NCBI GenBank assembly: GCA_030704615.1
Contig: CM060731.1
Span: 69,254,001 to 69,318,000 of the forward strand
DNA from: Takakia lepidozioides
Lineage: Eukaryota > Plantae > Bryophyta
Length of the DNA stretch: 64,000 bases
Direction of reading: 5' to 3'
Shown here piece after piece: positions 2,590 through 57,570 of this stretch. Positions within the stretch are counted from its first letter, which is position 1; each line of letters begins with the position of its first letter. The translations under genes were made by a program, and so were the position numbers. The notes beneath the pieces were generated by a model. That model saw only the letters and a program-made list of their open reading frames with translations. It had not been told where the DNA came from and did no database searches.

Positions 2590-3456
2590 TTGTTTTATAA
2601 AGCACTCTTGATATAGAGGTTGATGACTCCTATTGCTCCGGCATTGTTGGGCATCAACAGAGTCAATATTTGAACTCTACCTTGCATCCATGTGGAGGAG
2701 GCTATCACCAGGTTGGAGAGAGATGGGCTAACAAAAATAACCGTGCCGCCTCTAGAGTTTTCGATGGTCTGGTTCCAGTGGCTGTGATCAGCTGGCCAAA
2801 GCTGGTCTCCAAGAGCTGTAATCTTGGAAAGCTCAAGTTTATGTTCCTGCAGCACGATGATAGCATCTTGGTGAAGGTATGGAGCAAGCCAGGTTTTAAG
2901 GTTGGCCTTTTTGCTGGAGGTTTGCAGGAGCCAATTCCCCTTATGTTCCATGTGTGTAGTTTAATCAACATTGAACAAGCTTGGCAGGCTTAGAGAGAGA
3001 ATCTCCGAATTTGATGGCCTGGTTTCTTGGAAGAAAATTTTTGCTCTCTTGTCTTTAGGGAGCAATGTTTTGACCCATGTCAATCCTGGTGGAGCTTTGG
3101 AGGAGAAGCTTTTTAATTGAATGAAGAGCCCTATGGGTTTGTGGCTTAGAGTGGCTTGGTTAGATAGGTTTTGGAATGGGTCTTTGGGCAGGCTTTGCAG
3201 AAATGCTTAGTGACTGGGTGGTGGCATTCCAAACCAAAATTTCTTGTAGACAGCGAGGGGAGTTGGACCAACCCTGTCTGGGAATTGTTGTAACCAGCTG
3301 AGTTTGTCTTTGTCTGACCACTCTAATGTTGGCAGGGTCTTGCGATATCTCCACGCTGAGGGTCTCTAATCATGCATGCATAGTAAAAAACTATAGTAGG
3401 TTGGAGCCATACCTCACAATGCCCTTTTGGCTGGATGACAGGTGAAGTCAGTATTG

Positions 3457-3518
<62 letters not shown>

Positions 3519-6500
3519 GCAGGGGGCGGGTTGTCCTTGTTCCCATTGCAGGTGGGCTCCTTGGCTGAGTTTCTTGTTCTTCCATCCCTGCTGGCTGCAG
3601 AAGTTGAAGAGGCTCGTGTGGAATTTCCTCGGAGTCAGTCGCTTTCCAAAATAGCTTGAAGGATTTGGAAGCCATTTGTCAATGTGTCTCTGGCCCTGTA
3701 TTGAGCTTGATTGGAGCACCACGGTGCCGAGTCTGCTGCATCTCTAACCCACAATTCGTTAGAGAGTGGCGGGCCATTACAGATTTTTTCTGCATTCAGT
3801 AATGCCAGGATCTGAGTTGACGGGCCATCGCTTATCCCTGGGTAGTCTTCCACATAGGCTCCCCATGCATTTGGGGCAGTGTCAGAGAGTTTGAATTGGG
3901 GCAGGTAGGCTTTGAAGTAGTCTGCAATTTCCCCCCTAAGAGTTGGAATGGGATTGTTGTCCATGGGATTTTTGGCCACAAACTCTTTGACATCCTTAGT
4001 AATTAGCCATATTGCTTTCATGCTCTTTCTTTCCGGTGAGGTGATAAAAAATTGTTGATGCTTTTCCCGCCAATATATCAGCGGGTTTACCCAGGCAACC
4101 TGCGGTTCACTGTCTGTGTTGAGTTGTGAGCATCCTTGCAGATTTAATGCTGGAAAGGTTTGAAGTCTGAGGCAGATGTTGGCTAACAGAGGGTTCAATG
4201 CAATCCCAATCTTTGCTTTTGGGTCCTGAAAGTCTATAGAACGCATTGGCTGGTTGATTTGAATGCTGGATGGTTCAGCTCCTGGTGTGTAATATTGATC
4301 GTGAGGTCATGTGAAGATTGAGCTTGGTTTCGTGGTGGGTTCCGGACTTTAGTGTTACTTGAGGCCGCAACGACTTCCCTCTCTGTGGGATGTTGATGGT
4401 GGAATATGGCTTGCCGTGAGTCCAGGCATGGAGATGCCTCTCTTCTCTGGGTTATGACTGGTGCGTCAAAGGACGTCCCAGTAGCACGATGTCTAGATTT
4501 TGATTGCAGACAGTGGAAGTGCCTTGGCATTGGAGCATTGTGGGCCTCGGCCTCAAATATCATTGGGTCTGCTGGGCGTCTTGATCTTTTTGGCCACATG
4601 GGGAGACACAGGGACAGCTAGTGATCCTATCATCCTTCTTGAGCTCTGGCCTCTTGATGTGGGACGCTTGTGTTGGAAGGAGGCAGCTGATTGCGAAGAA
4701 TGCCTGGCTGAGGTCCATGAGTCTGTGGAGGCTGGAGGTTGAATGGGGGGGTTGTGTTCTTCTTTGGAGATTGTCTTTTCCTTTTTCCGCGGAGCCGCTA
4801 GAGAAATTATGAAATAACACATAGATGCTAAAGAATATAGCGGAAGCCTAGATATAAGTCATGACTACAGATTCTAGCGACAGTAATGGCAAGAGGGCGG
4901 AGCTCCGCCCTCACGGTGCACGCATCAAGATCCTTCGAATAATGGCTTGTCAAGATCCTTCGAATAATGGCTTGTCAGTAACGCATATAGGATGAATGTT
5001 GATCATTTCTGGGGGGCCTATGTGTCAGAAATAGGTGTCTATGAGTCCAAACTTGGAAAATTATATCAATTTCAAGTTTCAATTATAATTTCATGAAACT
5101 ACTTATATCTTGTTTCTTTTCATATTTGCTAATCCATGAAAATTATGTCCATTTTCCTCCCACTCATTCTACCATGAGCACTAGGTAAACTGTCCTTTAA
5201 GGTTCATCTCCCTTATCTCGTGGTACCGGCCCCACGGACCCATCACGGTCATGACCACGGCCACATCCACGTTGCCCTACGTCCCAAGAACTCCCATGAG
5301 TTCTCATATGTTCCTGGGCGTTCCATGCATTCCTGGATGTTCCTGAGCTCTCCCCGAGCTGGGGTTTGCTACTGCTCCTGGTGTCGTTGAGCTATGGCTT
5401 CTCCAGAGCCATCAGACCCGTCGCCCTGCACTCTTGAGCTCTCATGGCCCACTAGAAGCGCCCCCAACTTAACAAGCAAGCTATTCGCTGCCCAAAAAGC
5501 TCCTTTTCTTCGTGGCATTGAGCTTTCATGTGCCCCTGCATCCCACAGTTGAAGCAGGCTGAGCTGGAGCATCCTCCATTAGCTGATTGTGAGAAGTTAC
5601 CCATGTCGTCAATTGGCAGCCTGACATATTCTGGTATTGTGTCTTCGCTTGGCATCATGATGACCATTTTGGGGCCCCCATTTTCCTTGATTTTTGAGGC
5701 TATCGTGGCATCCTTCCATGCAGGGTCATTTCTCAGAGCGTCCAAGGGCATGTTGGGATCAAAGACTGCCAAACAATCCTAGATAGCATCCAAGAGAGTT
5801 TCCAATGACAGGGAGAAAGAAGAGATACTGGTATGGAATTTGTGAAACCACCACAATTCTAGGGGCCCATATCTTGCCATTTTTGTTGCCCATCATTGGG
5901 GACCACGGGAATATGTTAACATTGTACCCTTTGAGGTGGGGATTGAAATGTAAGGCCTTTTGAGCTGCTTCCCTGCTTTCAAATAGAAATGGAATAAATC
6001 CCCCTCCCCTTGCATGGCAGAAGTGTTGTTGAAGATCACCTTGCCAGATGGGATGTGACCCATTCTCTCACAGAAGAGCGATCCACTTTCTTCCCTGGAA
6101 GTGAATGAGGATGCTTATCTCTTGCATGTCAACAATCTTTTGATTCAAGCTCTGGATGTCCAGTTGAATGGAGAATGGGTCCTTACCCGTGGCCTCTTCA
6201 ATGGAAGCAGTGTCTTCCAGAGGTCCATCCTCCTTTTTTTTGGAGTTTTGGGAGGAGCTTGAATGCGCTGCCGAGCTTGGCCCTCCTGGCTGAAGAGAGT
6301 GTTGCTCCATTACTACATGTTGTTGAGCAGGTCCAATATCCTCTCCAAAAGCTAGAGCCTGGTGAGCAAGGAAAAAACAAGAGCCCGAGTGCATTGGAGG
6401 GCGCTACATAGGATTTCTTGTGATGTCTCGTGGGATTCTGCCTTTGGGATGCCTCCGTTGGCCTTTGTGGAGATAGTTAGGACCCATTGCTGCTGGTGGA

Positions 6501-9878: not shown

Positions 9879-12800
9879 TCAAAATAGTTGGACGAAGAGG
9901 CTGGTCGAGCCATCACCAAAAGACCGCAGGCCTGCAGATTTGACTACAGCGCGGCACAAAGGGCATGTCCTCTCCCTCTCAAACCTGGACACCCCACCAA
10001 AGCTAGTAGTGAGTAACCAAACAAATTCCCCGGTATTAGTGACTTTGAAAGAACATATATTGGAGAGACAAACAGAAATCAACATATTGAAAACATGGAT
10101 AGGAGGAATGTGAAGATGGATGAACAGGATGCAGACGTTTCTGTGTGCAGTATGGAGAAAGCAAAGGTATCCGATAACTCCATCCATGCAGATACTTTTC
10201 TCTTACAGAGATGACCAGTGCAAGATGGAAGAACACGCCAGACTGAATGTAAAGTAACCAGGCTTACCATTCCGATACACAATCTTCACAAAAAATGTGT
10301 TTACAACGAAGTGAGATTGGGGCATGCATCTTCTCTTGACAGATAGCGCACATGTCCCCTGCTGCAAGCACCTGCATCCGACCATTTCAAGCTCAGACCT
10401 TTCACACCCCTTCTGCTCTCTATCAACCATACATTACAACTCCCTCCCCCTACACCTCACTCTGCAAGGTTAGTATCCAACAGTGACTCTACACTCCAGC
10501 TTTGGGCTGAATACTACTGGCGCTCAATTTCATTCGTTCCCTTCTGCCCTTCCCCCAGATCCCTTTCCTGCTTCATCTGACAGGGAATGAGGTATTTGTC
10601 CAAGACTGCAGCCAGCTAAGCCCAATTTGTGTATTCATCCTCTTAAATTCCCTTCTTTCTTTCACAGGGTCTTTCTTAGACTCAGGAAGTTACATGCATG
10701 TGGCCAACTTGGGGGCCACAGCTGCAGTGCTGGAATCAATACCGATTTCTTGCATGATGTCCGCAGGAGCCACAAAATCCAATTGTTGTTCGCTGTGCAG
10801 AAACACAATGCTCTGATTTTTGGGACGACTTCAATATACCTTGGTGTTGTGAAACCCCACCAGGACACGGTCTCTCTGAGGACAGTCCTTAAGGGTATCT
10901 GTCATGGAACAAAATCCATTGATGGATGTGACTGCTTAGCCATGGCCAGAAGGGTAGAAAGTGAGAGAGATGTCTTCCATATTGGGGTGGACGTTGCCAG
11001 GACCCAGGGAAGAAACTTTATGCACTGGATCAGAGAGGGAGAGGGAGAGGGAGAGAGATCGAGCACAGTATGTCAGTTAACGAGAACTTTCACAGTTGTA
11101 GTGGAGAGGCCTGCAAAACCAGCACACATACCTCCTCACTGGTAGCATAGGCACCATATTGGACTTCCCTACGCGACAATGCTCGAACTGCTGCAATAAA
11201 TGTATGTCCCTGCCATGTCACAAAATGCCACAGGCCACAATCAGGACGTTGACCTGCAAAAATTCAAGATCTGCAGCTTAATGGACAGCCTTGCAGTTTG
11301 CTTCAGTAAATGCAAGGAGAATACTTACTCTGGAAAAAGGTAGGTAGGTAGTCTCTGGGGATTCCCCAAACCCAAGGATTTCAGTTCTCTCAAGCCAAGT
11401 TGCACCAGCTCTTAGCAGTGCCCTTACTTGTGTCCCGCAGGAAAAAGCACTGACAAGGACTTCAAAAGTCAAGAATCATACCTTCTCTACAGTTGAGGTG
11501 AGCTTGAATGTCAAGTATACGCCAGTCGTGAGAGAGGAGAAAAGATTGCCATAATCTTTGTTCAAAAAAAATCGATACCAGACAGGTACCGGTATCACAG
11601 CACGGTACAGTAACAGTATGTACTCAACCAGCGTCAACAGTTGTGCCTGCCACGCCACCACAGTCTTAGACCTGTATCTATCCCTCTCTTTCCCTGAACT
11701 TGTTTCCAGTCTGTGACATGGGGGAGGACATTATGGATGACCTCAAGGGTCTACCACCGAGACTAAAATTTAGACTCGGGGCAGGAAGCCTACTGTTGAA
11801 CAGCAAACAGAAGCAGAGAGGAAAGGGAGAGTGCATTGCCCGTTGTGTGGGCAACCTGAAGACTATATTCATTTTCTGATTCGTTGTCCGGGGTTCTCTC
11901 ACCAGAGAACCGCTCTCTTCAAATCTATCAAGGGAATTGTGCTTGTACCTCTATTTACCACTTTGAAAGTCTCAAGGCTGAGCCAAAAGCCCAGGCCCTT
12001 TTGGGGCCTAGTTATTGGGCAAACCACACACAGCAGGTTGATACTTGTGTAAAGGGATTTCTAGAGGATATCTGGAAAACCCGGATCAATTGTTTATTGC
12101 AAGGTAAGTCTTACTACCGGCGTCAGCCCCTGACAAAGGTAGGTTCTGTCCCTTTGTGTTCCGCTCAAACTGGGCACGGGGTCAATGGCCACAAGGCTAC
12201 GGCAAACAACGTCTTATGAGTACATTCTTTCCCCCATGTATCCGCAACAAGCTGACCCCAAAAAGGAAGTGAACAAATAAGTTTACACAAGACAAACTCA
12301 TGAAATGAAATAACGCACATAGCCAAGGTACCAAAAATAAATAAAACCCTTTGGGAAGGGTGCGGCCTGCCAAACCTGACGGCGGTAGTTCCGACCACGA
12401 CTGTTCTTGTAGTACATGAGAAGCCCACATTTGAGCACCATCACCGACTGCCGCACCATCGTATCTGTACATAAAGAAGGGTCAAGAGGAGAGGAAATCA
12501 GAAAAGGGCCAATGGGCCAGGGTTTGTAAGAAACCTTGTGTGCATGACAAAACAACCTCACAACCCCTTGAGCTCATCAAGACAGCAGGATGAAAAAACA
12601 ACTCCCTAGCGCCATTGGCAGAGTGCCAATTCAAGTAGAAGTGCGCACTTCTGAGGCCTGACACGTATACCTTCCACCTTCTCCGGCTTGGAACAACTTT
12701 GAAGTAGTATGTGTGGTATTCGGGCTATCAGTTGCACTCAATCGCCAATGTTTGACCCTCGACACGTATACGACTACACATTGGAACTCTGGGGGTCCGC

Positions 12801-17940: not shown

Positions 17941-18111
17941 ATGTAGCCCAATGGTAATGGGCACATACCACGTTGGATGTGGTTGTGGGTTCAAACCACG
18001 GTTTGATGTGTCATGAAGGTGTCCACCTTCCAGCTGGAAGGTAGTAGCCATTGTGGTCTAGAGACACCATAATTTACGCTCCCTTCGGGAGGCGTCTATA
18101 TATATATATAT
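17941..18111 (+). mobile_element. tRNA-derived SINE (family B) with a 3' hairpin and (TA)n tail
   Basis: A box TAGCCCAATGG, B box GGTTCAAACC, body tccaccttccagc...gagacaccataatttacgctcccttcgggaggcgtc, then (TA)n. A second copy lies at 42285-42428. Confidence 0.65.
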
Positions 18112-19079
18112 GCTCCGTCCTTCCCTTCTGTCCGCTTGGCTCTTCTGCCCTTGTAAGGGCTGCTCGGCCATTACGGTCTCTTCACCGCTCTAGGGTATTT
18201 TCCAGTGTTAAGAGATTATTATCTTTTGTAAGACCCGTTGGTTCGGGGTGTTGGTGGTGTGAGGTTGTGGACATACCCGCGCTGGAGACCAATAGTCATT
18301 TATTTAAGATGTTACATACCCCGGGGTTATCAATCAAGCCCATTATTGAATTTATTAGACAATATATCAATAACAATCAAACATGGATGATAACCTACTG
18401 TTATCAAACCGGGTTTAAGAAAATTCTTCAACCACTTTTTAAGAGCGCCCTCTCCATGTAAAATTTATACAAACTTATCAAAGTCATGAGGAATACTAAC
18501 TAACTAAATCAAAATATTATCTAATCACTAACTAATACTAATATTAATGTACTTATTTCGGTGGCTAGAGTTGTGAGGTTAGTTAGTATTCCTAAGTACT
18601 TTAAGTAGTTTGTATTTTTAAGATATGTGTGTGTAAATTTGGGCAATGTTCGACAACGTTTAAGTATTAGTATCACTTGCTGGTTTAATATGTTTTAAGG
18701 GGGTAGTAAATCCATGAAGCGATGGGGATAGGTTTCAAAATTAAGATGTGACATTTAATGTAGACGGCATTGAGTTCATGTGAAGAGCTACCCCTGGTTG
18801 CCAATAGTGGGCTGATTTGGGCCAGATTGAGTGTATGGAAGATCAACACGATTGTGCAAAAAATGGCAAAATGTTGCACAATGTTGTTGGCTTGGAAAAG
18901 TTTCAAGAGGACGGTTTATATTGCTAAGAAGATGAACGTCGACTACCAAGTGGAGGTTCAAGAAAGTACCTTGTACGGAGGAAAATTGATGAAGGTATTG
19001 TGCTGCATCCCTGCCTGTTGATAAAAGATGAAGTTAATTAGTGCATAACCAAACGAACAGAAAAGAAAAGAAAGTGGAG

Positions 19080-20230
19080 AAATGATATCGAATAGTACCG
19101 ATGTCGCCTTATTGGAAAGTCTCGCTGGCAGGCTTGGCATCCCAACGGACGTGTTTTGACGAGACCCCGGTATGTCCGAGGTATTCATTTTTTTCCTCGA
19201 GTCTGCTTTGTCTCTGACGAAGGACTTCTCTCCGGTGGAACCGATTTGTAGAAGAGATGGAAATGGTTTGGGGGCCCTATTCCGCTTCCTCGGTGCAGAA
19301 CATTGCACCAACACTGCAGGGTCGGGGAGCTGAGAAGTTGCAATTGAAGTTTCGTCCTTGTCCTTGTCGAAAGGGTTGCAGAGAAGGGGAACAAAATGGA
19401 AATTGTCCATTGAGCACTCCACATCCTGAATGGAATTCACACGTAATGAAGGGATTACCTCGGAACAAATTTCCAATGAAGACGTCGTTTGACAGGAAGG
19501 TCACAATCCGCAGATTTTCTGGCATGGAGTAAAACAAGAACATCAGACCCAGTACTAAGGAAAACAAAAGGACGAGTTAGAATTCAGATATAAGTAATTT
19601 TACCTGACTCCTTCTGATTTGGGCTGTCCAACCGTGCTGGGGAGATAAGGAGGGAAGAGAGGCAACAGTGTGCTGCGGAGCCGCAGCCTCAGCCGCGTCC
19701 TCAATGGATGACATTCTCGTGGTAGATTTCAGACCCTTGACACTTAACATGGAGGGTGAGGATTGTAGAGTGAGGTCCACGAAATCCCCTACACATTTGT
19801 CAAGTTGGCTTCCATCTTCGATATTCAATCCTATCCTAAGACAGAACATCATTTTCAGGAATGGACTGAAGAAGAGGGTCGTGCAATTGAAGGGAAGCCA
19901 AGTGCCTGGATGATGCTTCACCGTCGATGACAGAAATCTCAATAGTAGTATGAATGTTGTCCCTCTATTGACAAATTTCTTATATGAAGGATTCCAATGG
20001 AGGTCCCGACAAGAAGTTGGCATCAGCAACATCTCCATGAACCTGCAGAAACGAACTTACAAGGTCAATGTACAGACACAGGAAAACCTCCACTGCACAG
20101 TGGAGGTTGTCGGATTTGAAAAAACCCCCGAGACGAGTTTCGGAGAAGGCATGTATCTTAGAGGATCGGGATGGTATAGGGTGGAGAAACGCATGGATGA
20201 GACTAGGAGATAGCAAACAATTCCATGTCA
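19080..20230 (-). pseudogene. Degenerate low-complexity spliced exons downstream of (possibly part of) the ParB-MTase-NIF gene
   Basis: Short reading frames bounded by GT/AG-like sites (e.g. HCAVE|gttttc...ctgcag|VHGDVADANF; RRSQ|gtaaaa), with in-frame stops. No domain recognised. Confidence 0.3.
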
Positions 20231-20349
20231 ATTCAGATTGAAAAAGAAATCACAGTAGATAATAGTTTTTATATAAAAACAATACAACCTATAGAAAAAC
20301 CAATCAAAAATATACAATGAATCAAAGACGTGGTTGATCAATAAAATCT

Positions 20350-23300
20350 TTATTTTGAAGCATCGTATCGGAGATTCCCGTAATTAGAATCATCAACATA
20401 ATCCAAGAGAGGCTGAAACTTGGGATCGGTGGAAACATTCTGACAAGGCTTAAGTCCAATCCTCTTTTCCCTGAGATAACTGGAAACGGTGCGAGATTTC
20501 TTCATTTCAAGCAAATATTTCTGGAGAACCTTCTGGAGATAGCAAGAGTCCGTGTCAACGGATTCGAACGATTTTAGAATCAGACAGGATTCAGGCGGGT
20601 TCAACACACACTTAATAGCAGAATCGTCAATGAGTAGAGTGTTACTCCTATTGTACCACCAAATCTTTGCCAGACCGTCATCAATGGCTTCAAAAACAAA
20701 CTCGGTGGGTCATATCCTGATATAAATTGAGGGTGGACAGAAGTAGGCAGGAGATACAATCTTCTTGAGACATAACGAATGTCGGCTGATGAAGACCCCA
20801 AAGCATAAAGTCCAGGACAGGCTACAAGTTCTTGTACATCATGCAGCTCCATATACCTAGAAGGAAATGTTTGTTCAACTCTGTCCACATCTCACGATAT
20901 TTTTCCCGCCTATATATAAGTCGAAATCCAACAAGAACTGGTATCATGTAGTCTGTCTCGGACATTCGGGGGACATTGCAGCTCTTCTGATGCTTCAAGA
21001 CTTTGCACAAAACTCCATTCAGGTTAAAAATTATTAAGCGCAATCCTTTCGCAACTGGAGAAACTGGTGATGCAATCTATGAGAAATTCATACATCCACT
21101 TAGGTGATAATCAAGATAAACCAAGGACAGGATTGATGTTGGGAGCAACGTCCACTGGACAGTCGAGGTTCAGGAAAATCTAGAGCAGCCATCTACGTTT
21201 CAATCTGTTCCAAGGAAGCGTCAGGAAATTTTTGTTTTCTAAGATAAACCTGTCACTGCAAATCCCATAGCAAGAGGCATTTGACCTTTGGATCAGTATA
21301 AGGTCGACATCCTATGGGTTTTTCCACGTTGAATATATCAGTGTCTTTTCCCGATAACCGCAACTCTTCCAGGTGCGGTTTGAGTTCATCCAGAAGAAAC
21401 TTGTCCTTGTATGGGTCGACGAGCGCTTTATATTTTGGAAGGAAGATACCCATCGACTTTGGGTTCAAGTAGGACTTATACATATTTTCTACACGATAAT
21501 AAGTGTATTTGATTTGTACGCTACATTGTCGACTACAGTGAAAAGGTCGTAGAGACGTTTAAGATATATTGGCACTCTCGGATATTTGGGCCATTTGTCA
21601 CTGAAAGTCTGTCTATGCTTCACGCAGTTCTCATTGTTGAATTCCCTGATCTTGTAAAATCTTCTTCCAAACAAAGCCAGCCCGATATCCAGGACATTTT
21701 CTAACGGTCCAGTGTTCCAAAAGTAGACCTTAAAATGCTTAAGGACCCATTTCAGGAAGTCGTCCAATCCATTTCGGACTGCAAGCTTGAATTTTCCAGC
21801 GCACACACAAGGATGGGTTGCGGGAGGGGATCACGGGCCATCTCGGAGGTAAACCTCACCAAGGTAACCGACGTCAAGAACCAGGACGTAGTATCCTGGT
21901 CGACATCCTTTCGGTCCCTTAGAGAGGCGATACTAATCCTGTGGGTTCACAGATTTGTGATAGTCGACTGGAGGGTGAATCATATCATCCTGTGGAATAA
22001 CAAAACAATTAATTTATTTTGAAAACTAGAAGAAGGAAAAAAAAGAACATAGCTATGGTTATGAAGTGTGTACCCGTTTCGGGGAGGGATTCCGAATTTG
22101 TTGCTGTGGCTACTCGCTCTCTTTTCCTTCGCGCTGAGCAACGACCATCTCCGACCCATCTCCTCCATCTTGCAACGTCGACTGGGCAGTGGAGGTTGCG
22201 GATCAGGTGGGCTGACCCTTATTGTTAAGTCCACCAGCCTCCTCACTGTTTGAGTCGCGATGGGTTCTGTCCGGGTTTGTGTGATTTCCTCCAATTTCCG
22301 TTCATGGATCTATACGAATTTTCGTAACCGTCAGTCACATGTAAAGTGGAAGAAGGTTTGAAATATCAAGATACACATTAGATATTGGCAAAAACTCAAC
22401 AAGAACACAACCAGATGCAATACACACAATTTGTTCCATTTATAATACTTAGAGACACCGTAAATCTCCAGGTGTCATTCGTTACCTACATCCAAATTGA
22501 CATGCTGGGAGACACTTTGAGAGTAAGTTGGGCTCTGAGTTCGGCCTCTGCCTTCGCTGTTTTTTCCAGGAGACGGGCTTTTAGTCCGGGCTCTGTCACC
22601 ACTGTCCCGTTTTGCAGGAGACGGGCTCTTAGTCCTCGCTCTTTGTCCGCTGTCTTTTGTGGGACACGGGCTCTTTGACCTCGCTCTCTCTACCCTCTCT
22701 TTTGCGGGAGATGGGGACATTGGCGCAGGCTCGTCCCCATCTACAGGTTTGAACCAGTCTTCTGCACTCCCAACAATATTGTCGCCCACCTCGATTGAAC
22801 TAGCCTCCGCACCCCTTGAGGGTGAAGCACGATTACTCTTAGTTCTCTCGCTTGAACTCGACGAATCCACATCCAGAATCACGACCTTGTGGACCGCAAC
22901 GTCTTGCGTGATGTTCTCAAGTCCATCCAATGACTGAGTTCTGAAGTCCTGAATCACATTTAGGTGTCCAGCCTCCCAACGGTCTGCATTGTCTCCCGCA
23001 TGGCCCTCTTTGTCCTCGTTACCATCGATGCCCTTGTCCTCCTCTCCGTGTTCGGAATGTCCGCCTCCTTCTGCCAAGTCTTCATCTTCCTCCTCCTCAT
23101 CCTCATCATCGTCTCCGCCGTCAAACTCTTCAGCAACATCGTCATTCTCAATTTGAAGCTTCTTAAAATTCGCTTCAACTTTTCCTTTGCAATTTTTTAT
23201 TTTGGTTGAGTGGTTGATGTCAAGCACTCGAATGTTTCTTGCCTGCAGATAAACCCAGTCAGTAAAACAGAGGACATGTTCGATCAAAAATGTAAAAATT

Positions 23301-25446
23301 GTTTTTAAAATGAAAAAAAGTTTTATACTTACATGAAGTGCGTATGTCAACATCACGCCTCCGAAGATCTTGACAGCGGACATCTCGTCTCGACAAAACA
23401 GGGAGGCCAAATAGTCGTATGTATCAACTCGTAGCTCATGATTATAAGTCTTGCACTCTTCTTCAAAAGCTGATGGCTTCTCAGAAGGCCCTTCCAGAAT
23501 CAGCTGAATTGGCTCGATTAAGAGTACGGTGGTGATGTGCTCGTCCGGATTCTGAATCTCCTCAGGTGTCGCTGGAAAAACATAGTCCAGGCACAGTACA
23601 GTCCGAGAGAAAGTCTTCGTGTTGTTTTTGTAAACATTTTCATACTCCCCCGGAACATAAAATCCCTGCCGGACAAGATACGATATTCTTCCGGGACCAT
23701 TTTGGATGTAGGAGACCAGATTGGCCGAGGACGGTTGCGTCGAGAAGAAAACAAAAGCACTCGTGTTCATTTTCTGAGCCACAAAAGCCTCCAGTATGTT
23801 CACATAATCCTTGGACTCAAATACCACAGAGTCATCTTCAAAAATTGTATTGACGAACACCATCGTTATGTTGTCAAACCGTTTCTTCGGTGCAAGTCGC
23901 AGACGGGACTTAGCATCGGTGAATTTTGTTCCCCCCCCCCCCCCATGAGAGCGTAATGAGACTTGAAACTCGCAATAATCGCCATGGCATCCTCTCTATC
24001 CTCATAAGCTTTCTTGATGGATGAGATGTACTTAACAAAAGCGGCCGTGAGTGGTTTTGTCTCCATGTTCATCTTGATCTTGCTTTGGATGTAATCTGTC
24101 CCTAGTTTGTCTTTAAATGTTGAGAACTCTGCCTTATTGAAGTGGTATTTTTTCTTCACTTCACGCCACTCGTCCTTAGTGTACGGTTCCGTGCACTGTT
24201 TGCTCCTCCGAGGCCACCCCAACACTTCCATAACATCGTCGACAATAAACCGGCGCATTTTCATGTCGTCTATGTACTTGTTCATGCCTTGAATTGATTT
24301 GTCTTGTCCTTTGTAATTTCGAATGGTCAATTTCAGGTCCAGGATTTTCTGCGCAACTTTATCTGTTCAACCCTTGCAGCTTTGCGATAGCAGATTTCGT
24401 GAGCTGTTGTTGTTCACCTTATACTGTATCCCAAGCGGGTCGAGTAGCTTTCCCTGCTCCCAGTTTTTGAAAACATCTTCCCAGATCTTCCAAACGTCGT
24501 CGTCACAAAGTACCAGGACCATTGCCTCCTTAATGCTACCCATTTCAAGTATCAAATGACAGGCAAACATGAACTCCTACACATTCATCCACGGAAAAAT
24601 TAGGTGTCACTCTGACAACAGAAGTATTATTTAGCACAAAATGAATGTGAATAGTAGATTTTTATTCCATAAATGCATACCTTCCATTGTTTCGTCTCGG
24701 ACTCGGTGGTGTGATCGTTGTATTTCTTTGGCTTCCCCCTCAGGTTGAATAACATTCGTGCATGCGCAACTTTCTCCGGCATTGTTGTATCAAACTTTTG
24801 CGCCTTATTGGGATCGTTGAGGAGCTTTGACAACTTCAGGAGCCTTTGTTCATCGGTAGACCATACAATCTTTGCAGGCCACTCCCGGTAGTACTCCTTC
24901 AGTTCGCTGTCGGCAAGATCCTCGAGAAGTTCCTGCTACAAATAATGTAAAATGGGTGAGAGAGTTGAAAATGTAGGGACATATCCAATTTTGTTGTTCA
25001 ACACCAACCTCCACTGCCCAGAGGAGGTTCGTTAAAAGAGAGGTCTGGGTGGAAGTGAAGTCCATTACCTTTGCTGCCACGATGGTGTGTTGTCCACCTA
25101 TGACGAAGAACCTGGATACGTCCATTTTCTTCCATTGCTTCGGTCGCGATGAAGTAATCTTCTCGGGATTGGAAGGGTTGATTGGTGCGAGATACACCGG
25201 ATGTTTGGAGTCGAACAAATGAAGCTGGAATAGTCGTGCTTTTACTTCGTCCTTATGCTTGATATTTAACGGCCTGTAAACCATGCTCCTTGGAGCTAGT
25301 TCCATCATGGAAACGTTCACAAGGAATGTACTCTCGAATCCAAATGGAAATACGTCATTGTATTCCTTCGTGAGCCTCTCCTCCATCTTCTCGCATTTTT
25401 TCTTGTCGAAAATTTCCCCAGCTTTAGGTCTCTTATTATCTGACAT
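20350..25446 (-). pseudogene. Decayed multi-exon gene: ParB/Srx-like domain + permuted N6/N4 DNA methyltransferase-like domain + acidic/SP-repeat linker + two FCP1/NIF-like HAD phosphatase domains
   Basis: Phase-0 GT-AG introns at 25068-24933, 24680-24577, 23332-23243, ~22489-22310, ~22073-21990 (after an upstream frameshift) and ~21250-21077 link the ORF-track pieces. ParB-like: RPLNIKHKDEVKARL...FFVIGGQHTIVAAK. MTase-like: FDNITMVFVNTIF ... ELRVDTYDYLASLFCRDEMSAVKIFGGVMLTYALH|ARNIRVLDI. NIF-1: VLVLDVGYLG...VRNGLDDFLKWVLKHFKVYFWN...YLKRL...SNTLII. NIF-2: LIIFNLNGVL...HFLLGIWSC...FLKPL...NTLLIDDSAIKCVLNP. Several stops and frameshifts. Confidence 0.68.
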
Positions 25447-26421: not shown

Positions 26422-27990
26422 ATGGCAGCCCGCATCGGGGCCCTGGAGAGGCTTGCGGCTCTCTCTGCGGAGCGGGAGAGGGGAATGGAAGCACAACTGA
26501 AGAAGATAGTGGAACTCATGATGGGGCAAAAAAGGGGTGTGACGGGTGGCATTATAGAAGACCCCTTTGCTGCGACCATTGTACCTGACAAGGAGGAAGT
26601 AATTGTAGTGGGTAGGGATGTGACCGAGGTCCAGCCTGTTGTTGATGATATTCATAGTGGGGGGCAGGGTCCACTCGTTGAAGAGGGAGAGGTCCAGCAA
26701 GTTGGTGGGGATGACATGGATGATGGGGGGGTCATTGCTGATGATGGGGGAAAAGGGGAAGCTGTAGGGGGAGAGGGTGGTAGTTTGCCTGGTCCAGGCT
26801 GCAGGGGGACCAAAACTTTGTCCTCCGGGGTGACTGTTGTCTCCCAACCCACTGAAGTGAGACCCTGTGACACCCCTTCAAAAGCTCCTTTCATTGAAAA
26901 GTCGAAACTAATTGTTCTAGACCTGAACGGGATCCTGTGCCACTCTATTCCTAACTTTCAGCCCAACCCGAGGCGTCATTGGCCATGGGTGTTGACCACC
27001 AACAAGTATATTTTTCCAAGGCCCCAGGTCTACGAGTTTTTAAACCTTCTCTTCCGGTATTTCTACGTTGGGATATGGTCATGTGCTTCCAAGGGGAATG
27101 TTGCAGACATCTTGAAAGTGGTAATGCAGGGGGTCAAGGGTTCTCCCTCTTTGTGTGGTCACAAGAGGAGTGTGACCCCTTGATAGAGCCACACCCCACA
27201 AAAAGGCTTGCCGTACAGAACTTACAGAAGAGACTGTCGAGGGTGTGGTCGCAATTTTCTGGATTTAACGAATCCAACACCCTCTTAGTGGATGATTCAC
27301 CACACAAGGGGAGGGGGAACTCCCCTTTGAACATGGTCCATCCATTGTCGTTTGATGTCACTGGCAATGTCAGTGAGGGGCCCGATTCAGACTACCTTTT
27401 AGAAACAGTCTGGCCCTACTGCCAAGATTTGTTTTGCTCCAAGGATTTGCGTGTCTTCACAAGCACGCGGAAGCTGACCCCGACTGGGAGCTTGAATGTG
27501 GGAGAGGATGGGGTCGTTGGGGGAAGTGCTTCTGCGCCCATGCAGGTGAAACTAACCTTACTGTTTGCAACATGACATCGAAGCCAAAAGAGATGTTTGT
27601 TTTGTTCCCCTCGGATGCCCTCTCACACAAGGCTAGCACTATATGTTTTGCAGGGACCACAGGGAGTGGCATTGGGGTCGGATGTGAAGAAGGTGGGTCC
27701 TGCGCCAACGACCATAGTGCTATGGCGCCAGCATTCCGGATCTGCCCCCCGGCATGAGGAGGCAGCGCCCAAGGTATGGTTGTTCCCAGCCCCTCTCCGC
27801 AAACTTACTTGGTTGGTTTCCTTTATGGATACACTTCCTGAAGCGTTGTAATGTGTATTCATTGCAGGTGAGCAAGAGGAGTGGGCTGTCCCCGACACCA
27901 TCATTGCAGCAGGACGTGGTTCCCCAGGCATGCATTCATGGCTCCTTGCTTTGCCTGGTTTCTAGTAGGGTTATTTTTGCCACGAAGTTG
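26422..27990 (+). pseudogene. FCP1/NIF-like (HAD superfamily, DLNG type) phosphatase gene with one frameshift; TE cargo
   Basis: KLIVLDLNGILCH...IFPRPQVYEFLNLLFRYFYVGIWSCA, a frameshift near 27145, then LFVWSQEEC...KRLSRVWSQF...NTLLVDDSPHKGRGNSP...YLLETVWPYC. Further small exons after 27546 (27654-27772, 27868 onward). Confidence 0.85.
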
Positions 27991-29324: not shown

Positions 29325-29379
29325 TACGACTCAAAATGAGTCGTTACCCCAGTGGTAAATGACACGAATGCTTCTAGTG
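29325..29379. repeat. CACTA terminus (TIR GACACGAATGCTTCTAGTG = reverse complement of CACTAGAAGCATTCGTGTC) with a subterminal ACGACTC/GAGTCGT hairpin
   Basis: 29361-29379 is identical to 40447-40465, is followed by TGA, and is preceded by tacgactcaaaatgagtcgttacccc, similar to tacgactccggagtcgttgacccc at 40301. Confidence 0.82.
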
Positions 29380-29382
29380 TGA

Positions 29383-32299: not shown

Positions 32300-33630
32300 G
32301 AGGGATCGGATGTCCTAGCTTGGGAGTTTAATTATGATCAATCATTTGGCCAAGTGCAAATTGACATTTCTGGCTAAGACAAAGTTGTTCTTGGAACAAA
32401 CAAGCTCCATGGCATGAAGCTTTGACAGTGTGAGGTTTATGAGCCAGCCAAGTTGACCAAGAACTTCAGTGAGCAACTTGCCAGGCCTACAGACTGGAAG
32501 GGCAAAGCGCCGAGTCTCACTAAATTGTTCTCGTACAGAGGGATTAACTTTGAGGTCAAGAAAACCTTGCTTTGTCGCGTCATTGGACTTGCCTTGGAGT
32601 ACGCATTTGCTATATGGGTTGATAACTCCAATGAGGCTAGGTCTGCAGAATCCTTCCAAGTGGGGGTGCTTAAGGAGTGGATGTCCGCATGCTCCAAAAC
32701 AGCCAATGTGGCTGTTCGGGGTGGGTGTGGCATCCCTTCCTTAAGCTCTTGCGGAGATTAATTGAAGGTGAGATGGTGGAGTCTGTTGCAACACATGTCT
32801 TCACACCAGAGATCGTAGGTTAATCGACTCTATATCTTGGAAACAGAACCGTCGAGCCAAACAGGCCAAGTCTTGGCAGAAGACAGTAGAATTGACTCTC
32901 AAGGATTTGAATGTGGACCCGCACATCTTCATCCTGCTGGATAAATGCAACTTAGAGACTGTAGTGTCCACGGAAGTGAGTGCTACCAGAGAAAATGTGT
33001 AATGAAAATGAAGTTAGGCAGAAAACATCCCTGAACATGTTTTCAATCTGTGACATGGGGGAGGACATCGTGGAAAAACCGAAGGGTCTACCACTGTGTG
33101 CAGAGGGACTAATTTTAAGGTCAAGGAAATGTTGCTTTGTCACGTCATTGCACCTGCGTTGGAGTACGCATCTTCTATATGCGTTGATAACTCCAACGAG
33201 GCTAGGTCTGCAGTATCCTTCCAAGTGGGGGTGCTTAAGGAGTGGATGTCCGTATGCTCCAAAATAGCCAATGTGGCTGTTCATGATGAGTTTGGCATCC
33301 CTTCCTTAACCGGAAGTGGTGGGAATAGCTGGTGAGATGGTGGAGTCTATTGCAACATATGTCTTTACACCAGATATCGTAAGTTAATCGACTCTATATC
33401 TTGGAAATAGGACCGCCCAGCCAAATAGGCCAAGTCCTGCCAGAAAAGACTAGACGAGACTCTCAAGGATCTGAATGTGGACCGTCAAGTCTTGACCTTG
33501 CTGGAACCATGTGACTTAGAGACTGTAGTATCCAAAGCCATGTGTGCTGCCACAAAATTGTGTAATGACAAAGAAGTTAGGCATAAAACATCCATGAACC
33601 TGTTTCTAGATTGTGACATGGGGGAGGACA
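32300..33630 (+). mobile_element. LINE ORF2 post-RT fragments (RTE-X/L2-like), tandemly duplicated with ~565-bp period
   Basis: KKTLLCRVIGLALEYAFAIW...ESFQVGVLKEWMSACSKTANVAVRGGCGIPSL at 32560-32745, repeated as LLCHVIAPALEYASSIC...KIANVAVHDEFGIPSL at 33130-33310. Confidence 0.7.
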
Positions 33631-39397: not shown

Positions 39398-40465
39398 ATC
39401 TTAGTGTCCATTAAGCTGGCAGCTCGTAGACGAGAGCTGTGCTAAGGACTCTTACTGTCCTACCCATTTTGTACAGTCCTGCAAGCGCGCAAGGGCGAGA
39501 CAGTTAATAGTATCGATAATGTCCCGGAATGTGGTCCATACTGTCTTGTGAACAAACCTATATTTACAGTATGATTGTAGTTCAGAACCAAAGGGCATAT
39601 CCTTCAGCCTTGACGTCTTTGCGATCTTCTTCTGTGACGCCTTCTTTATAACTTGAGAAATGGAAAAACAGCTACACCTCAAATTATTGCAAGGCCACTC
39701 AATGGCACTAAGAACGTTTCGAGCATGCTGTCAGAAAACTAGACGGGCAAAAACCCAATTCAGCAACCTCACCTTGCGTGGATACTTGGGAATTGATACC
39801 AGAAGGGCATGCCCGTATGCGCGCTCCATCGTGCCTCCATCCAGCACATTCTATAAATGTTGAATGACCAAGACCCCGATGGTACACCCTTTTGAGAAGC
39901 CACTACGTGCGCTCACAGTATACGAAGGCCTTGCCGTGTCAGGATTCGCATTCCCACGTCCCGCCATGTCCGACGAAGCACTTGCATCCCTGTCTCTGCC
40001 GGATGGAGGCAACACGTATTAAAATATCTATTCCCCCAAGGCCACATTTGGTTTACCTCTTTTTGTGAAAGCCACGTCAGCAAATGTGCTGCCGAATCAT
40101 GGGTGCAATGAATGCGCAGTGGTTCATGGAGTCGTTGAGTCGACTACATATTCACTTTAATGAATAAATATCTTTATTCCATTAATCGAATTAGGAAAGG
40201 AAATTTGTAGTCGCATGTGCAGTAATTACAACCACTTGTAATTTTGGCTTTTTCAAATTTTATGTATTTACGCAATTCGTAAAATAGCCCGGAATTCTGC
40301 TACGACTCCGGAGTCGTTGACCCCACTTCTGTCCGCTGTCTGAAATGCCCCCGTGGGCCCACATTGTCTGTTTCGACTCTCCAGTAGTCCCGTTTACTAC
40401 CAAATGGTTCCCGGAGTGGTCGCGGACATGCAGTCGATTCAGAAAAGACACGAATGCTTCTAGTG

Positions 40466-42284: not shown

Positions 42285-42428
42285 TTGTGGCCCAGTGGGT
42301 AATGGGCATTCAATCCACCGATTGGTGTATCCACCTTCCAGCCGGATTCGGGCTCATCAAGAGACACCATAATTTACGCTTCCTTGCGGAGGCGTCATAT
42401 ATCGTATTATATATATACATATATATAT
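42285..42428 (+). mobile_element. Second, internally deleted copy of SINE family B
   Basis: tgtggcccagtgggtaatgggca...tccaccttccagc...gagacaccataatttacgcttccttgcggaggcgtc followed by a TA-rich tail; matches 17941-18111. Confidence 0.65.
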
Positions 42429-46400: not shown

Positions 46401-49400
46401 CTGTCACACCAGATCATGTCACCTTCGGTGCCCTCATTACTGCTTGTGACCGTGCTGGCCAGGTATATCTGTTGCCATTTTCTGTCTGTTCGCTGGAGTC
46501 CTTGAAATTTGCTTTGATGGCGTATGATCTACTCATGTGGGGGACGCAGTAATTTGGTCCTGCACACACAAAGAGAGGACAGCCACACAAAATCTCATCC
46601 ATGTAGTGATGCACAGGTGGACAGAGCCCTTGAAGTCTACAGGACAATGCGAGCAAGCCGAATAAGAGGAACACCGGAGTGTTATACTGCGGCTGTGCAT
46701 GCTTGCAGTCAAAATGGCAGATTGAAGCTTGCTTTTACTGTATTTGAAGATCTTAAGAAGGATGGCATTCGACCAGATGAGGTATTCCTTGCATACAGTT
46801 AATGGTGGTGTCTTGGCCATAAAGTCTAGCTGCAGCTGAGGCCTCCCAGCAGTGACACCAGTTAACCAAGTGCTTAACATTATCAGAGTTAATAGTATCA
46901 AGCAAGATACGGTTATTTGCAGCCCTTTGGTACAGGTTGGAGTAATTGAATAACGGCTAAAGTCGCAACCTTCTGAAACTTGTTCAGCACATGTTGAATG
47001 TGGCTCAGGTGGTGATGTAGTGGTCACAGCTTGACAGCAGGTATGCTTTTGAAAGCATGACACGGTGATGGTGAGGGGGAGAGTCAGTGTAAAGCTACTG
47101 TCGAATTTGACGAGCAAATGCTGGCTTGGCATACCTCTGGCTTCCAGATGGGGTCCGAAGGGTCGTCGTTGTTTCCTCCCTATGTCAACTTCGCCAATAA
47201 CTGTAGTCTCTGGAGTATGAGTGAACTTTCTTCAGTTTTCCTAGGTTCCCCTGTGTTAAGAAGCCATAAGAGCTAGTAATAGCGAACTCGTGAAGAGGGT
47301 CGGCAAGCTAAGGGTCATATTATGCCACTGTGTAAAATGAGCCTGCAATCCACGTCTCCAAGCACTTCATGGTTGCTTCCATGCGATGAACACCTACAGC
47401 AGTTGCATGCCCTGAGGAACTCTTTGGTAAGCTCAGATGAGGCTAAAGAGCATTTGTGTACTTGCAAGGGTTAGCTAAGTTGTAACATCACTGTTGTTTG
47501 TGCTAAGCAGCAGTTGGTTTGTATGGGCACAGGTTTTTTTTAGTGCATTGGTGGATGTTGCGGGTCATGCTGGGCAAATTGATGCAGCCTTCAATGTACT
47601 CCAAGAGATGAAGAGCGTGGGCATGGTGCCAGGAGTCGTGGTGTATAGTTCCCTGATGGGTGTCTGTAGCAATGTAGGTGGCCCAAAATGGTGATCTTAT
47701 GTTTGTGTCCAGTAGCTTCACTTGAAGCTGGGTTCTTCATACCTTCCTGCATTACAGCATACCTTGTTTGGCTAGCTTGGTGAAACTCGTGCCAGTGTTG
47801 TGGGTATGCCTGCACATGCAATTTTTGGGCCTGTGTGTTATGAGACATTAGGCATACACCTAAGTTACATACAATATTCTGCGTACCATGTCTTGAGCAT
47901 TTTCTACACAGTCATGCTTTAAGCTTGAGTTTTGCCTCTCTGTTTGGTTGTCAGTTAAGATACTTGTGGTCTGTTATTACTTCTACGTAGAGCACATACT
48001 GGTGACAGTGTGTTCTTTAGTGTTAAAAGGAGCTGTTCAACTTACTCCTGTGGATCATGCAGTTGGGCAACTGGGAGAGAGCGTTGGTTGTGTATAAGGA
48101 GATAAAAATCTCTGGTTTACGGCCCACTGTATCGACTTTCAATGCCCTTATGACTGCTCTATGTACGTCCTCGAACAGATCCAATGAGAATCCGCTTGAA
48201 TGTACTGTTCACATGTTCAGCACAAACTGAAGATTAAGTGCATGGCCAGTAGCCTTGGAAGTTAGTTGAAGTAGCAGTATCTTTACATCTAAAGGGATGT
48301 ACACATAACTGAACCTCTGACTTGAGGCTTATTCTGAGTTCTTAAGTCTTTTGATTGAATGGAGCAGGTGGCGGAAAGCAGCTGCAGAATGCGTTGGGTG
48401 TATTGCAAGATTTGAGGAAGGCAGGGGTGATCCCAAATGATGTTACCTACAGTGTTTTGCTGAAGGCTTGTGAGAAGTGAGCAACCCCCCCCCCCCCCCA
48501 ACACACCCCCTCACTCCTCTTGGGAACCGCCTTATCCAGTTCTCCACTTTTGTATGACTTCACAAAGTTCAATTCTTCCATTCCTTCTCTGAGATATGTT
48601 TGACCGAGTTCCTTTTGTTCTCACTTGCTGCACTACTGTCCCATAAGCTGTGCGTTCATTCTAGAAGGGTGAATGGAGGAGAGCCAAAATTAGACCTTCT
48701 CAGGAAACATCTTTCTCCGAAACTCTTTGGGCTTTTTGGATATGCTTTGGTTCTTTGTTTCCCGCATATTATGAGATATAAGGCAGATACCACTGTCTCT
48801 TTAGAGACTCATAGGCTTTTGCTGAGACTTTCAGAAGTGCCTGGCAGTTTACCTGCAGGAGGCTTCCTCTTTGGGCAATTTTGATGTGGTTGTATTTGTT
48901 GTTCTACTTTGTCCCATGGGCCCTCAGGGCCCCTTTCACTCTCTTGTTTGTGTTCCATATGCCCTTGGGCCTGCTGTGGACGTTCTTAATTTCCAGAGAA
49001 GTCTGTCGGCATATCTTCATGAGGGTCTCAATTTTAAGAGTATATCTTGATATGAAAGACTGGATTTTGGGCTTGTTCATGGCCCCTTTTCTTCATTTTT
49101 CTTCCATTATTTTATCCTATAAGCTCTTTGAGCTTTTTGCAGTCATAAAGTTTCTTTCTTCCCTTCTCTTGTTCCTTTCTTGCTCTTGCTTCATACCTAT
49201 GTTCTATCCGTGTTTGCAGCATATCTGCACAAGGCGTTAAATCTTAGACAATCCCTTGATCAGTAGTTGTTTTGGTGCTTGTTGGGGGCCCCACTCTCTT
49301 TCTTCTTTCATGCTTTTCTTGTCCCATGAGCTCTTTGAGCTTTCCGCGGACGTTATGAAGTATCATTTCCTTTCATGATATCAGGATGGTAGCATGCTAC

Positions 49401-57039: not shown

Positions 57040-57570
57040 AGTGAGGCAGACTGGGGTGACAAGCATATTGAGTGACAACAGACACCAGGGTGACTGGGAA
57101 GGGAGTGTCACTCCAAACTTGACTAAGTATTAGATTTATTCAGAAGAAGTGTCACCCCATGTGTAGGGTGACACAAAACAGAGCCAGGTGACACAGGTGA
57201 CAGTAACCACACCGGGGTGAAGGGTGACTGGCATCCAGAGTGACACCAGACAACAGGGTGACACGGAAGGGAGTGTCACTCCAGGTATTAAAATCAGACC
57301 TGGACCCGGGTGACAGGTGACATCATCCTTATTGACACCAGACAACACCAGGGTGACACAGAAGGGAGTGTCACTCCAAACATGACTAAGTATTAAAGTG
57401 TCACCCCATACAGAGGGTGACACAAACTAGTGGTGACACGGACTCTGGTGAAGAGTGACACCAAGGGACAACTTGACAAAGTATTGAAATATAGTAAGAG
57501 GAGTGTGTCACCCCACGCTGGTGACAATAACCACCACAGGAGCTGGGGTGACACTATCGCCTCCCCCCCT
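57040..57570. mobile_element. Non-autonomous DNA-transposon-like element dense in GGTGACAC/GTGTCACC motifs
   Basis: More than 20 GTGAC/GTCAC cores in both orientations, plus three copies of a unit like gggtgacacggaagggagtgtcactcca (~57088, ~57256, ~57351). Confidence 0.55.

Follow-up and report, generated by a model that had tools for sequence, protein, structure and literature searches.

A decayed, intron-bearing gene with two NIF/FCP1-like domains and a private palindrome in a transposon-rich stretch of Takakia lepidozioides

We analysed a 64,000-nucleotide (nt) stretch of the genome of the moss Takakia lepidozioides (contig CM060731.1, positions 69,254,001 to 69,318,000; hereafter the window, whose first letter is position 1 of all coordinates) and, within it, a spliced multi-exon gene that open reading frame (ORF) analysis resolves on the minus strand as a chain of open stretches from 25446 to 20353. 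The conceptual product has about 1,400 amino acids (aa; ~1,400 codons), and the stop codon occupies 20352-20350. An earlier description of the locus, made from the letters alone (the sequence-only reading), had fused these stretches into one polypeptide with ParB/Srx-like, methyltransferase-like and tandem phosphatase-like parts; the ORF pieces it quoted all lie on the minus strand and where it had placed them. The gene is composed of the following parts, in the direction of reading:

25069-25446, minus strand: exon 1, 126 aa, the putative ParB/Srx-like part; ends in ...FFVIGGQHTIVAAK, followed by a GT donor
24936-25068, minus strand: intron 1, 133 nt, GT-AG, with a palindrome copy inside at 25006-25029
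24681-24935, minus strand: exon 2, 85 aa, QELLEDL...KQWK, its frame set by the 133-nt intron
24680-24577, minus strand: intron 2, 104 nt, GT-AG
24418-24576, minus strand: exon 3, 53 aa, following the 104-nt intron
24417-24349, minus strand: possible intron, 69 nt, GT-AG, whose use would excise an in-frame TGA
23945-24348, minus strand: exon 4, lysine-rich and helical-looking, entered through the 69-nt intron or across the TGA at 24369-24367
23931-23944, minus strand: G14 homopolymer, at which the frame slips by one base
23341-23930, minus strand: exon 5, proposed to be methyltransferase-like, FDNITMVFVNTIF ... SEKP ... KIFGG..LTYALH
23340-23245, minus strand: intron, 96 nt, GT-AG, AT-rich, in frame
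22490-23244, minus strand: exon 6, with an ARNIRVLDI stretch, an acidic tract and four 45-nt SP/RS-type repeats (repeat family D7)
22489-22310, minus strand: intron, 180 nt, GT-AG, frame-compatible, which would lead in phase to the open stretch at 22309
21256-22013, minus strand: NIF-like domain 1 (NIF-1), Pfam NIF match, DVGY for DxDxT
20353-21076, minus strand: NIF-like domain 2 (NIF-2), Pfam NIF match and similarity to a neighbouring gene, NLNG for DxDxT, LLIDDS kept

The lengths of the 133-nt and 104-nt introns account exactly for the frame changes between exons 1, 2 and 3. Six GT-AG introns had been proposed to join the pieces; we find four that keep the frame (133, 104, 96 and 180 nt), and the 69-nt stretch is a possible fifth. 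If the 180-nt intron is left unspliced, the ORF terminates at TGA 22477-22475, right behind exon 6. The picture of a decayed gene with introns, set in a transposon-rich stretch, holds up in the stops, frameshifts and GT-AG introns that we see, as does that of an acidic, SP-repeat linker ahead of the NIF domains, which is present in exon 6. At least three in-frame stops and at least three frameshifts are distributed across the gene. The in-frame TGA at 24369-24367 is a lesion unless the 69-nt intron is spliced out, and the slip at the G14 run may be genuine or stem from the assembly. Two stops, at 21935-33 and 21833-31, and a frameshift near 21490 interrupt NIF-1; in NIF-2, the lesions are a stop at 20824-22 and a frameshift near 20700. 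Elsewhere in the window lie a poly-G run (>50 nt) at 3450-3516 and a poly-C run at 48485-48500, which together with the G14 run suggest a homopolymer-prone sequence or assembly.

We searched domain and protein collections with single exons or uninterrupted ORFs of the window throughout. Pfam NIF (PF03031) matches NIF-1 at 21492-21830 (E 3.8e-4, 20.6 bits, profile positions 34-92) and NIF-2 at 20353-20709 (E 1.5e-3, 18.7 bits, profile positions 105-159), the two matches being collinear and in the correct order. Both scores fall just below the family cut-off of 21.8 bits because lesions split both domains. A divergently oriented neighbour provides a second line of evidence:

26422-27572, plus strand: neighbouring NIF-like gene, with LDLNG and LLVDDSP and one frame change near 27140

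This gene stands head-to-head with the main gene, whose start is about 1 kb away, and has a long N-terminus rich in Gly, Asp and Val. It matches Pfam NIF above the cut-off (E 4e-8, 33.4 bits; its C-terminal part, E 0.095), and a database homologue search gave no match to it. The N-terminal part of NIF-2 is similar to the plus-strand ORF 26422-27180 (tblastn, 2e-6) and its C-terminal part to that of the neighbour (blastp, 1e-6). The two tandem FCP1/NIF HAD domains of the sequence-only reading are thus backed by collinear Pfam matches and by the similarity to the neighbour gene. The role of the nucleophile motif DxDxT in HAD phosphatase catalysis is established, and the motif is not intact in any of the three domains, which read DVGY (NIF-1), NLNG (NIF-2) and DLNG (neighbour). 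Because DxDxT is missing from all three, we judge normal HAD phosphatase chemistry unlikely; going by these residues, the domains are unlikely to be normal phosphatases. Compared with the CTD (carboxy-terminal domain) phosphatases FCP1/SCP (NIF, PF03031), the domains here are recognisable as HAD-type NIF domains and keep the DD motif in NIF-2 and the neighbour gene, whereas DxDxT is replaced and the domains stand in tandem in a transposon setting.

The gene is further marked by a 24-nt palindrome, AACSTCCACTGNNCAGTGGASGTT, that occurs in five copies within 6.1 kb (18935-25029), where shuffled sequences give an expectation of 0:

18935: palindrome copy with 3 mismatches
20085: palindrome copy, perfect
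21147: palindrome copy with 1 mismatch
22174: palindrome copy with 1 mismatch
25006: palindrome copy with 1 mismatch

No further copy with six or fewer mismatches exists in the 64-kb window, the next best site having at least seven, so that the distribution of mismatches is bimodal (<=3 versus >=7). The five copies share no similarity in their flanks, so that they are short sites in themselves and no remnants of a longer repeat. The copy at 25006 lies in intron 1, inside the ParB-like exon pair; that at 22174 lies between the linker and NIF-1, and that at 21147 between NIF-1 and NIF-2, while the copies at 20085 and 18935 follow the stop codon by 245 nt and 1.4 kb, respectively. Four of the copies are spaced by 1.03-1.15 kb. 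Palindromic sites in or near the gene, a trait of ParB systems, are present here as putative cognate sites. A palindrome scan of metagenomes returned nothing. The private palindrome is a new observation, and together with the NIF domains it forms the solid part of our results. The suggestion of a transposon-borne effector of chromatin or transcription fits the private palindromes. At the left edge of the window lies a second, unrelated palindrome of 22 nt, TGAATGTCGTTGACGACATTCA, at 468-489 and 590-611; its two copies, one perfect and one with 1 mismatch, are 122 nt apart.

Exon 1 reads VIGGQHTIVAAK, and its GGQHTxxAA motif resembles the GGCHR and DGQHR motifs. Among its nearest neighbours in a language-model embedding (scores 0.89-0.94) are DUF6551 (8 of 30), DUF3723 and a cluster with ParB_N; the scores for DUF6551 and ParB_N, 0.89-0.92, are leads only. 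Phage proteins that join DUF6551 to ParB-CTPase folds have been reported (bioRxiv 10.1101/2025.10.10.680097). Several results weigh against a ParB assignment. In Box II, the P-motif, Gly and His are kept and Thr stands in place of Arg (GGQHT), an arginine that is required for NTP binding (bioRxiv 10.1101/2025.10.10.680097). The shared-feature count for DUF6551, 137, is below the level usual for true family members. Exons 1 and 2 were without a match in Pfam, NCBIfam, PHROGs and PADLOC (E threshold 10), ParBc, Srx, DndB and DUF262 included, and among PDB sequences. Exon 1 also matched nothing in a set of 5.8 billion proteins (restricted to those 0.55-1.75 times as long as the query ORF of 198 aa) and nothing in a scan of viral contigs. 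Single-sequence AlphaFold, run without an alignment, returned a mean confidence (pLDDT) of 39, too low for a usable model. Of the proposed ParB/Srx resemblance, the short motif and the weak embedding leads remain, whereas profile and PDB matches and the arginine are missing; exon 1 is a plausible candidate for a ParB/Srx-type domain, and the assignment is a lead. In fungi, DUF3723 is an accessory gene conserved among the Starship giant transposons, and we found no link between DUF3723 and ParB in the papers searched. Exon 4 matches no family in Pfam, NCBIfam, PHROGs or PADLOC.

The middle part of the gene fared less well. Exon 5 had been assigned to the beta-class N6A/N4C methyltransferases (PF01555), and no sequence test supports this assignment, including a profile test controlled by shuffling. 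We found 0 matches to exon 5 in 1.84 billion representative sequences and nothing in Pfam, the PDB, atlas neighbours, NCBIfam, PHROGs or PADLOC; a metagenome scan was empty, and tblastn of the gene segments, exon 5 included, against phages produced chance matches only. For a more sensitive comparison, we used a custom N6_N4 profile of 45 diverse sequences, comprising IMG/VR phage loci (10 of them checked against Pfam) and YhdJ. Exon 5 scored -2.1 bits against it, a value that 78 of 317 shuffled sequences equalled or exceeded, and hhalign assigned a probability of 0.2%. The single-sequence AlphaFold model of exon 5 reached a pLDDT of 31 and was not usable. A methyltransferase origin thus finds no support in the sequence tests on this copy. 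The degenerate motifs that had been read here consist of NTIF at the proposed position of motif IV, (D/S)PPY, and IFGG at that of motif I, FxGxG. These letters do stand in exon 5; the alignment that fixes them at the two positions is not significant, and the non-significant hhalign path places FDNITM..IFEDD near the siDL..IFADPPY region. Exon 5 may nevertheless derive from a beta-class DNA methyltransferase, as a dead and highly diverged relict; if it does, the domain would be catalytically dead. Ten IMG/VR methylases with long N-termini contained no ParB domain, and a homologue search with E. coli YhdJ for ParB-methylase fusions recovered close orthologues only.

The surroundings are rich in CACTA remains. 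The Tnp2, DUF4218 and DUF4216 domains found at 36.6-39.4 kb belong to a CACTA transposase, and a CACTA terminal sequence lies 4 kb from the gene:

29361-29379, minus strand: CACTA terminal sequence CACTAGAAGCATTCGTGTC, 19 nt, with an identical, co-oriented copy at 40447-40465 (2 matches, 0.01 expected)

The end at 40447-40465 closes the Tnp2-bearing element at 35.5-40.5 kb. A hairpin motif, ACGACTC...GAGTCGT, precedes each CACTA end, at 29326 and 40302; the subterminal regions of the two ends are otherwise unrelated. To the left of the gene we found no matching CACTA 5' end. The sequence CACTAGAAGC at 5450 was considered for this role and set aside, its 3-nt flank being GCC versus TGA at 29380-29382, and a 36-nt inverted pair at 12179/51657 was rejected as terminal repeats. 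Within the window there are neither inverted repeats bracketing the gene nor a second gene copy, and ORFs of at least 85 aa at 1-20 kb and 26-35.5 kb encode no other transposase domain (Sola transposases may lack a Pfam model and could have escaped notice); these findings count against a transposon-borne gene. Because second copy, bracketing transposase and terminal repeats are absent from the window, the mobility of the gene is something that we infer.

Other repeats of the window are recorded here for completeness. At 57054-57550, GGGTGACA and TGTCACCC motifs are clustered (7 and 3 copies in 500 nt, with inverted pairs) in what looks like motif-saturated non-coding DNA of another element. 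A tandem duplication of ~535-565 nt with 84% identity occupies 32533-33630, and 67 nt of it are found again at 11691-11757. A 40-nt direct repeat of 90% identity at 18057-18096 and 42357-42396 (24.3 kb apart) ends in the GC-rich stem CGCTCCCTTCGGGAGGCG.

Taking the locus as a whole, we favour, with modest confidence, a dead and divergent copy of a transposon-borne accessory ('helper') gene as its best explanation. In the active ancestor, the N-terminal domain would have been a diverged ParB/Srx-type module that recognised the palindromes, in the manner of ParB and parS, and this recognition would have held the remainder of the protein on the DNA of its own element. The tethered parts, an acidic/SR-like linker and pseudo-phosphatase modules, could have engaged the RNA polymerase II CTD or its regulators, so that expression of the element would have been favoured or the element shielded from silencing. 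We regard tethering to the element's own palindromes as the most likely working model. A more far-reaching proposal, which we hold to be doubtful, is that transposons of seed-free plants carry a three-part helper, which unites a ParB-type DNA clamp with a methylase fold and CTD-phosphatase folds, both dead. This helper would load on family-specific palindromes that lie within the introns of the gene encoding it and beside that gene, and would thereby label the element as 'self', to be transcribed or to be protected from silencing.

The fusion of the NIF domains to the upstream part is unproven; exon 6 is followed directly by a stop if the 180-nt intron is unused. The locus could then be a co-oriented cassette instead of one fusion, its first gene ending at TGA 22477-22475 and being followed by one or two NIF-like genes, with the palindromes at 22174 and 21147 in intergenic positions. 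We consider this arrangement quite possible, if short of probable: the position of the stop agrees with it, the splice sites seen offer no in-phase junction from a putative exon 7 to NIF-1, and lesions are far more numerous in the NIF parts than in the part upstream of them. The exact 180-nt GT-AG intron that joins exon 6 in phase to the stretch at 22309 speaks for a single gene and is not decisive.

A different origin of the upstream half would leave ParB and methyltransferases out altogether. The N-terminal and middle parts could be a lineage-specific transposon protein, such as a TnpA-like second protein of CACTA/EnSpm elements, with the NIF domains as captured host fragments and the palindromes as binding sites of that protein or of a transposase. 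ParB and methylase signal is missing in every sequence test, the identical CACTA end lies 4 kb off at 29361-29379, and giant EnSpm elements with accessory genes have been published for algae. The palindromes, however, run through the gene body at steps of ~1 kb with no subterminal clustering, the CACTA 5' end was not found to the left and the embedding leads favour ParB-associated families; on balance we think this origin unlikely. Least probable by far is a decayed single-copy host gene for an NIF-type phosphatase with a novel N-terminus that happens to lie in a transposon-rich region, the palindromes being unrelated regulatory or structural elements. The absence of a second copy from the window and from the public collections searched would be expected of such a gene, whereas its many lesions, the concentration of the private palindrome on it, the adjoining paralogous NIF gene and the CACTA and Mutator remains all around would not.

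The helper-gene explanation that we favour has counterparts in algae. Accessory genes that combine ParB with an N4/N6 methyltransferase were described in 2025 for Sola1 and other transposons of brown, red and green algae (PMC12477816; bioRxiv 10.1101/2025.02.11.637652), among them a 1,104-aa ParB-like and N4C/N6A methylase accessory protein of Sola1-1_Ec32 from Ectocarpus, to which proteins of green and red algae are similar (PMC12477816). The statement of the sequence-only reading that no such architecture had been described is thereby outdated; for land plants, we found no description of ParB-methylase accessory genes in the papers searched. The Takakia gene resembles the algal genes in (i) its size (~1,100 aa in algae) and DNA-transposon setting, (ii) the proposed order of a ParB-like followed by a methylase-like part and (iii) the proposed role of binding and modifying the element's own DNA. 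It differs in that profiles detect neither domain and catalytic motifs are missing at the proposed positions, in that two NIF/FCP1-like domains follow, and in that it is a dead copy in a plant host with no Sola transposase identified in the window.

The PAG3 gene of Plavaka transposons in Bostrychia combines a ParB-like part with a 2-oxoglutarate (2OG) oxygenase and adjoins arrays of inverted repeats (bioRxiv 10.1101/2025.02.11.637652). Both cases would pair a ParB-like accessory gene with element-borne inverted repeats as its own presumed binding sites; the effector is an oxygenase there and NIF-like here, and tandem arrays beside the gene contrast with single 24-nt palindromes ~1 kb apart in and behind the gene. 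N6_N4 methylases and DUF6551 are frequent fusion partners of the ParB fold in phages (bioRxiv 10.1101/2025.10.10.680097). ParB-parS systems and orphan phage ParB-CTPase fusions share with the Takakia gene palindromic sites in or adjoining the gene of the presumed binder and an N-terminal motif of the GxxH/R..AA type, but the P-motif arginine is replaced here (GGQHT), no helix-turn-helix or dimerisation domain was identified and the 24-nt palindrome is unrelated in sequence to parS.

A functional parallel is offered by the VANC proteins of VANDAL (Mutator-like) elements in Arabidopsis, which recognise short motifs concentrated in their own family and counteract silencing. For the gene described here, VANC can serve as a working analogy only, as there is no sequence relationship and the domains differ.

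The value of this copy is that of one data point, in which NIF domains and a private palindrome occur together amid CACTA remains, and the pairing of palindrome and gene constitutes a directly testable protein-DNA pair. If the three-part helper exists, it would amount to a ParB-parS counterpart carried by eukaryotic transposons, undescribed for land plants. Should the ParB reading hold in intact copies, bacterial-type modules for site-specific DNA loading would have been reused by eukaryotic transposons for self-recognition and, if this is true, coupled to modules with possible access to the regulation of RNA polymerase II.

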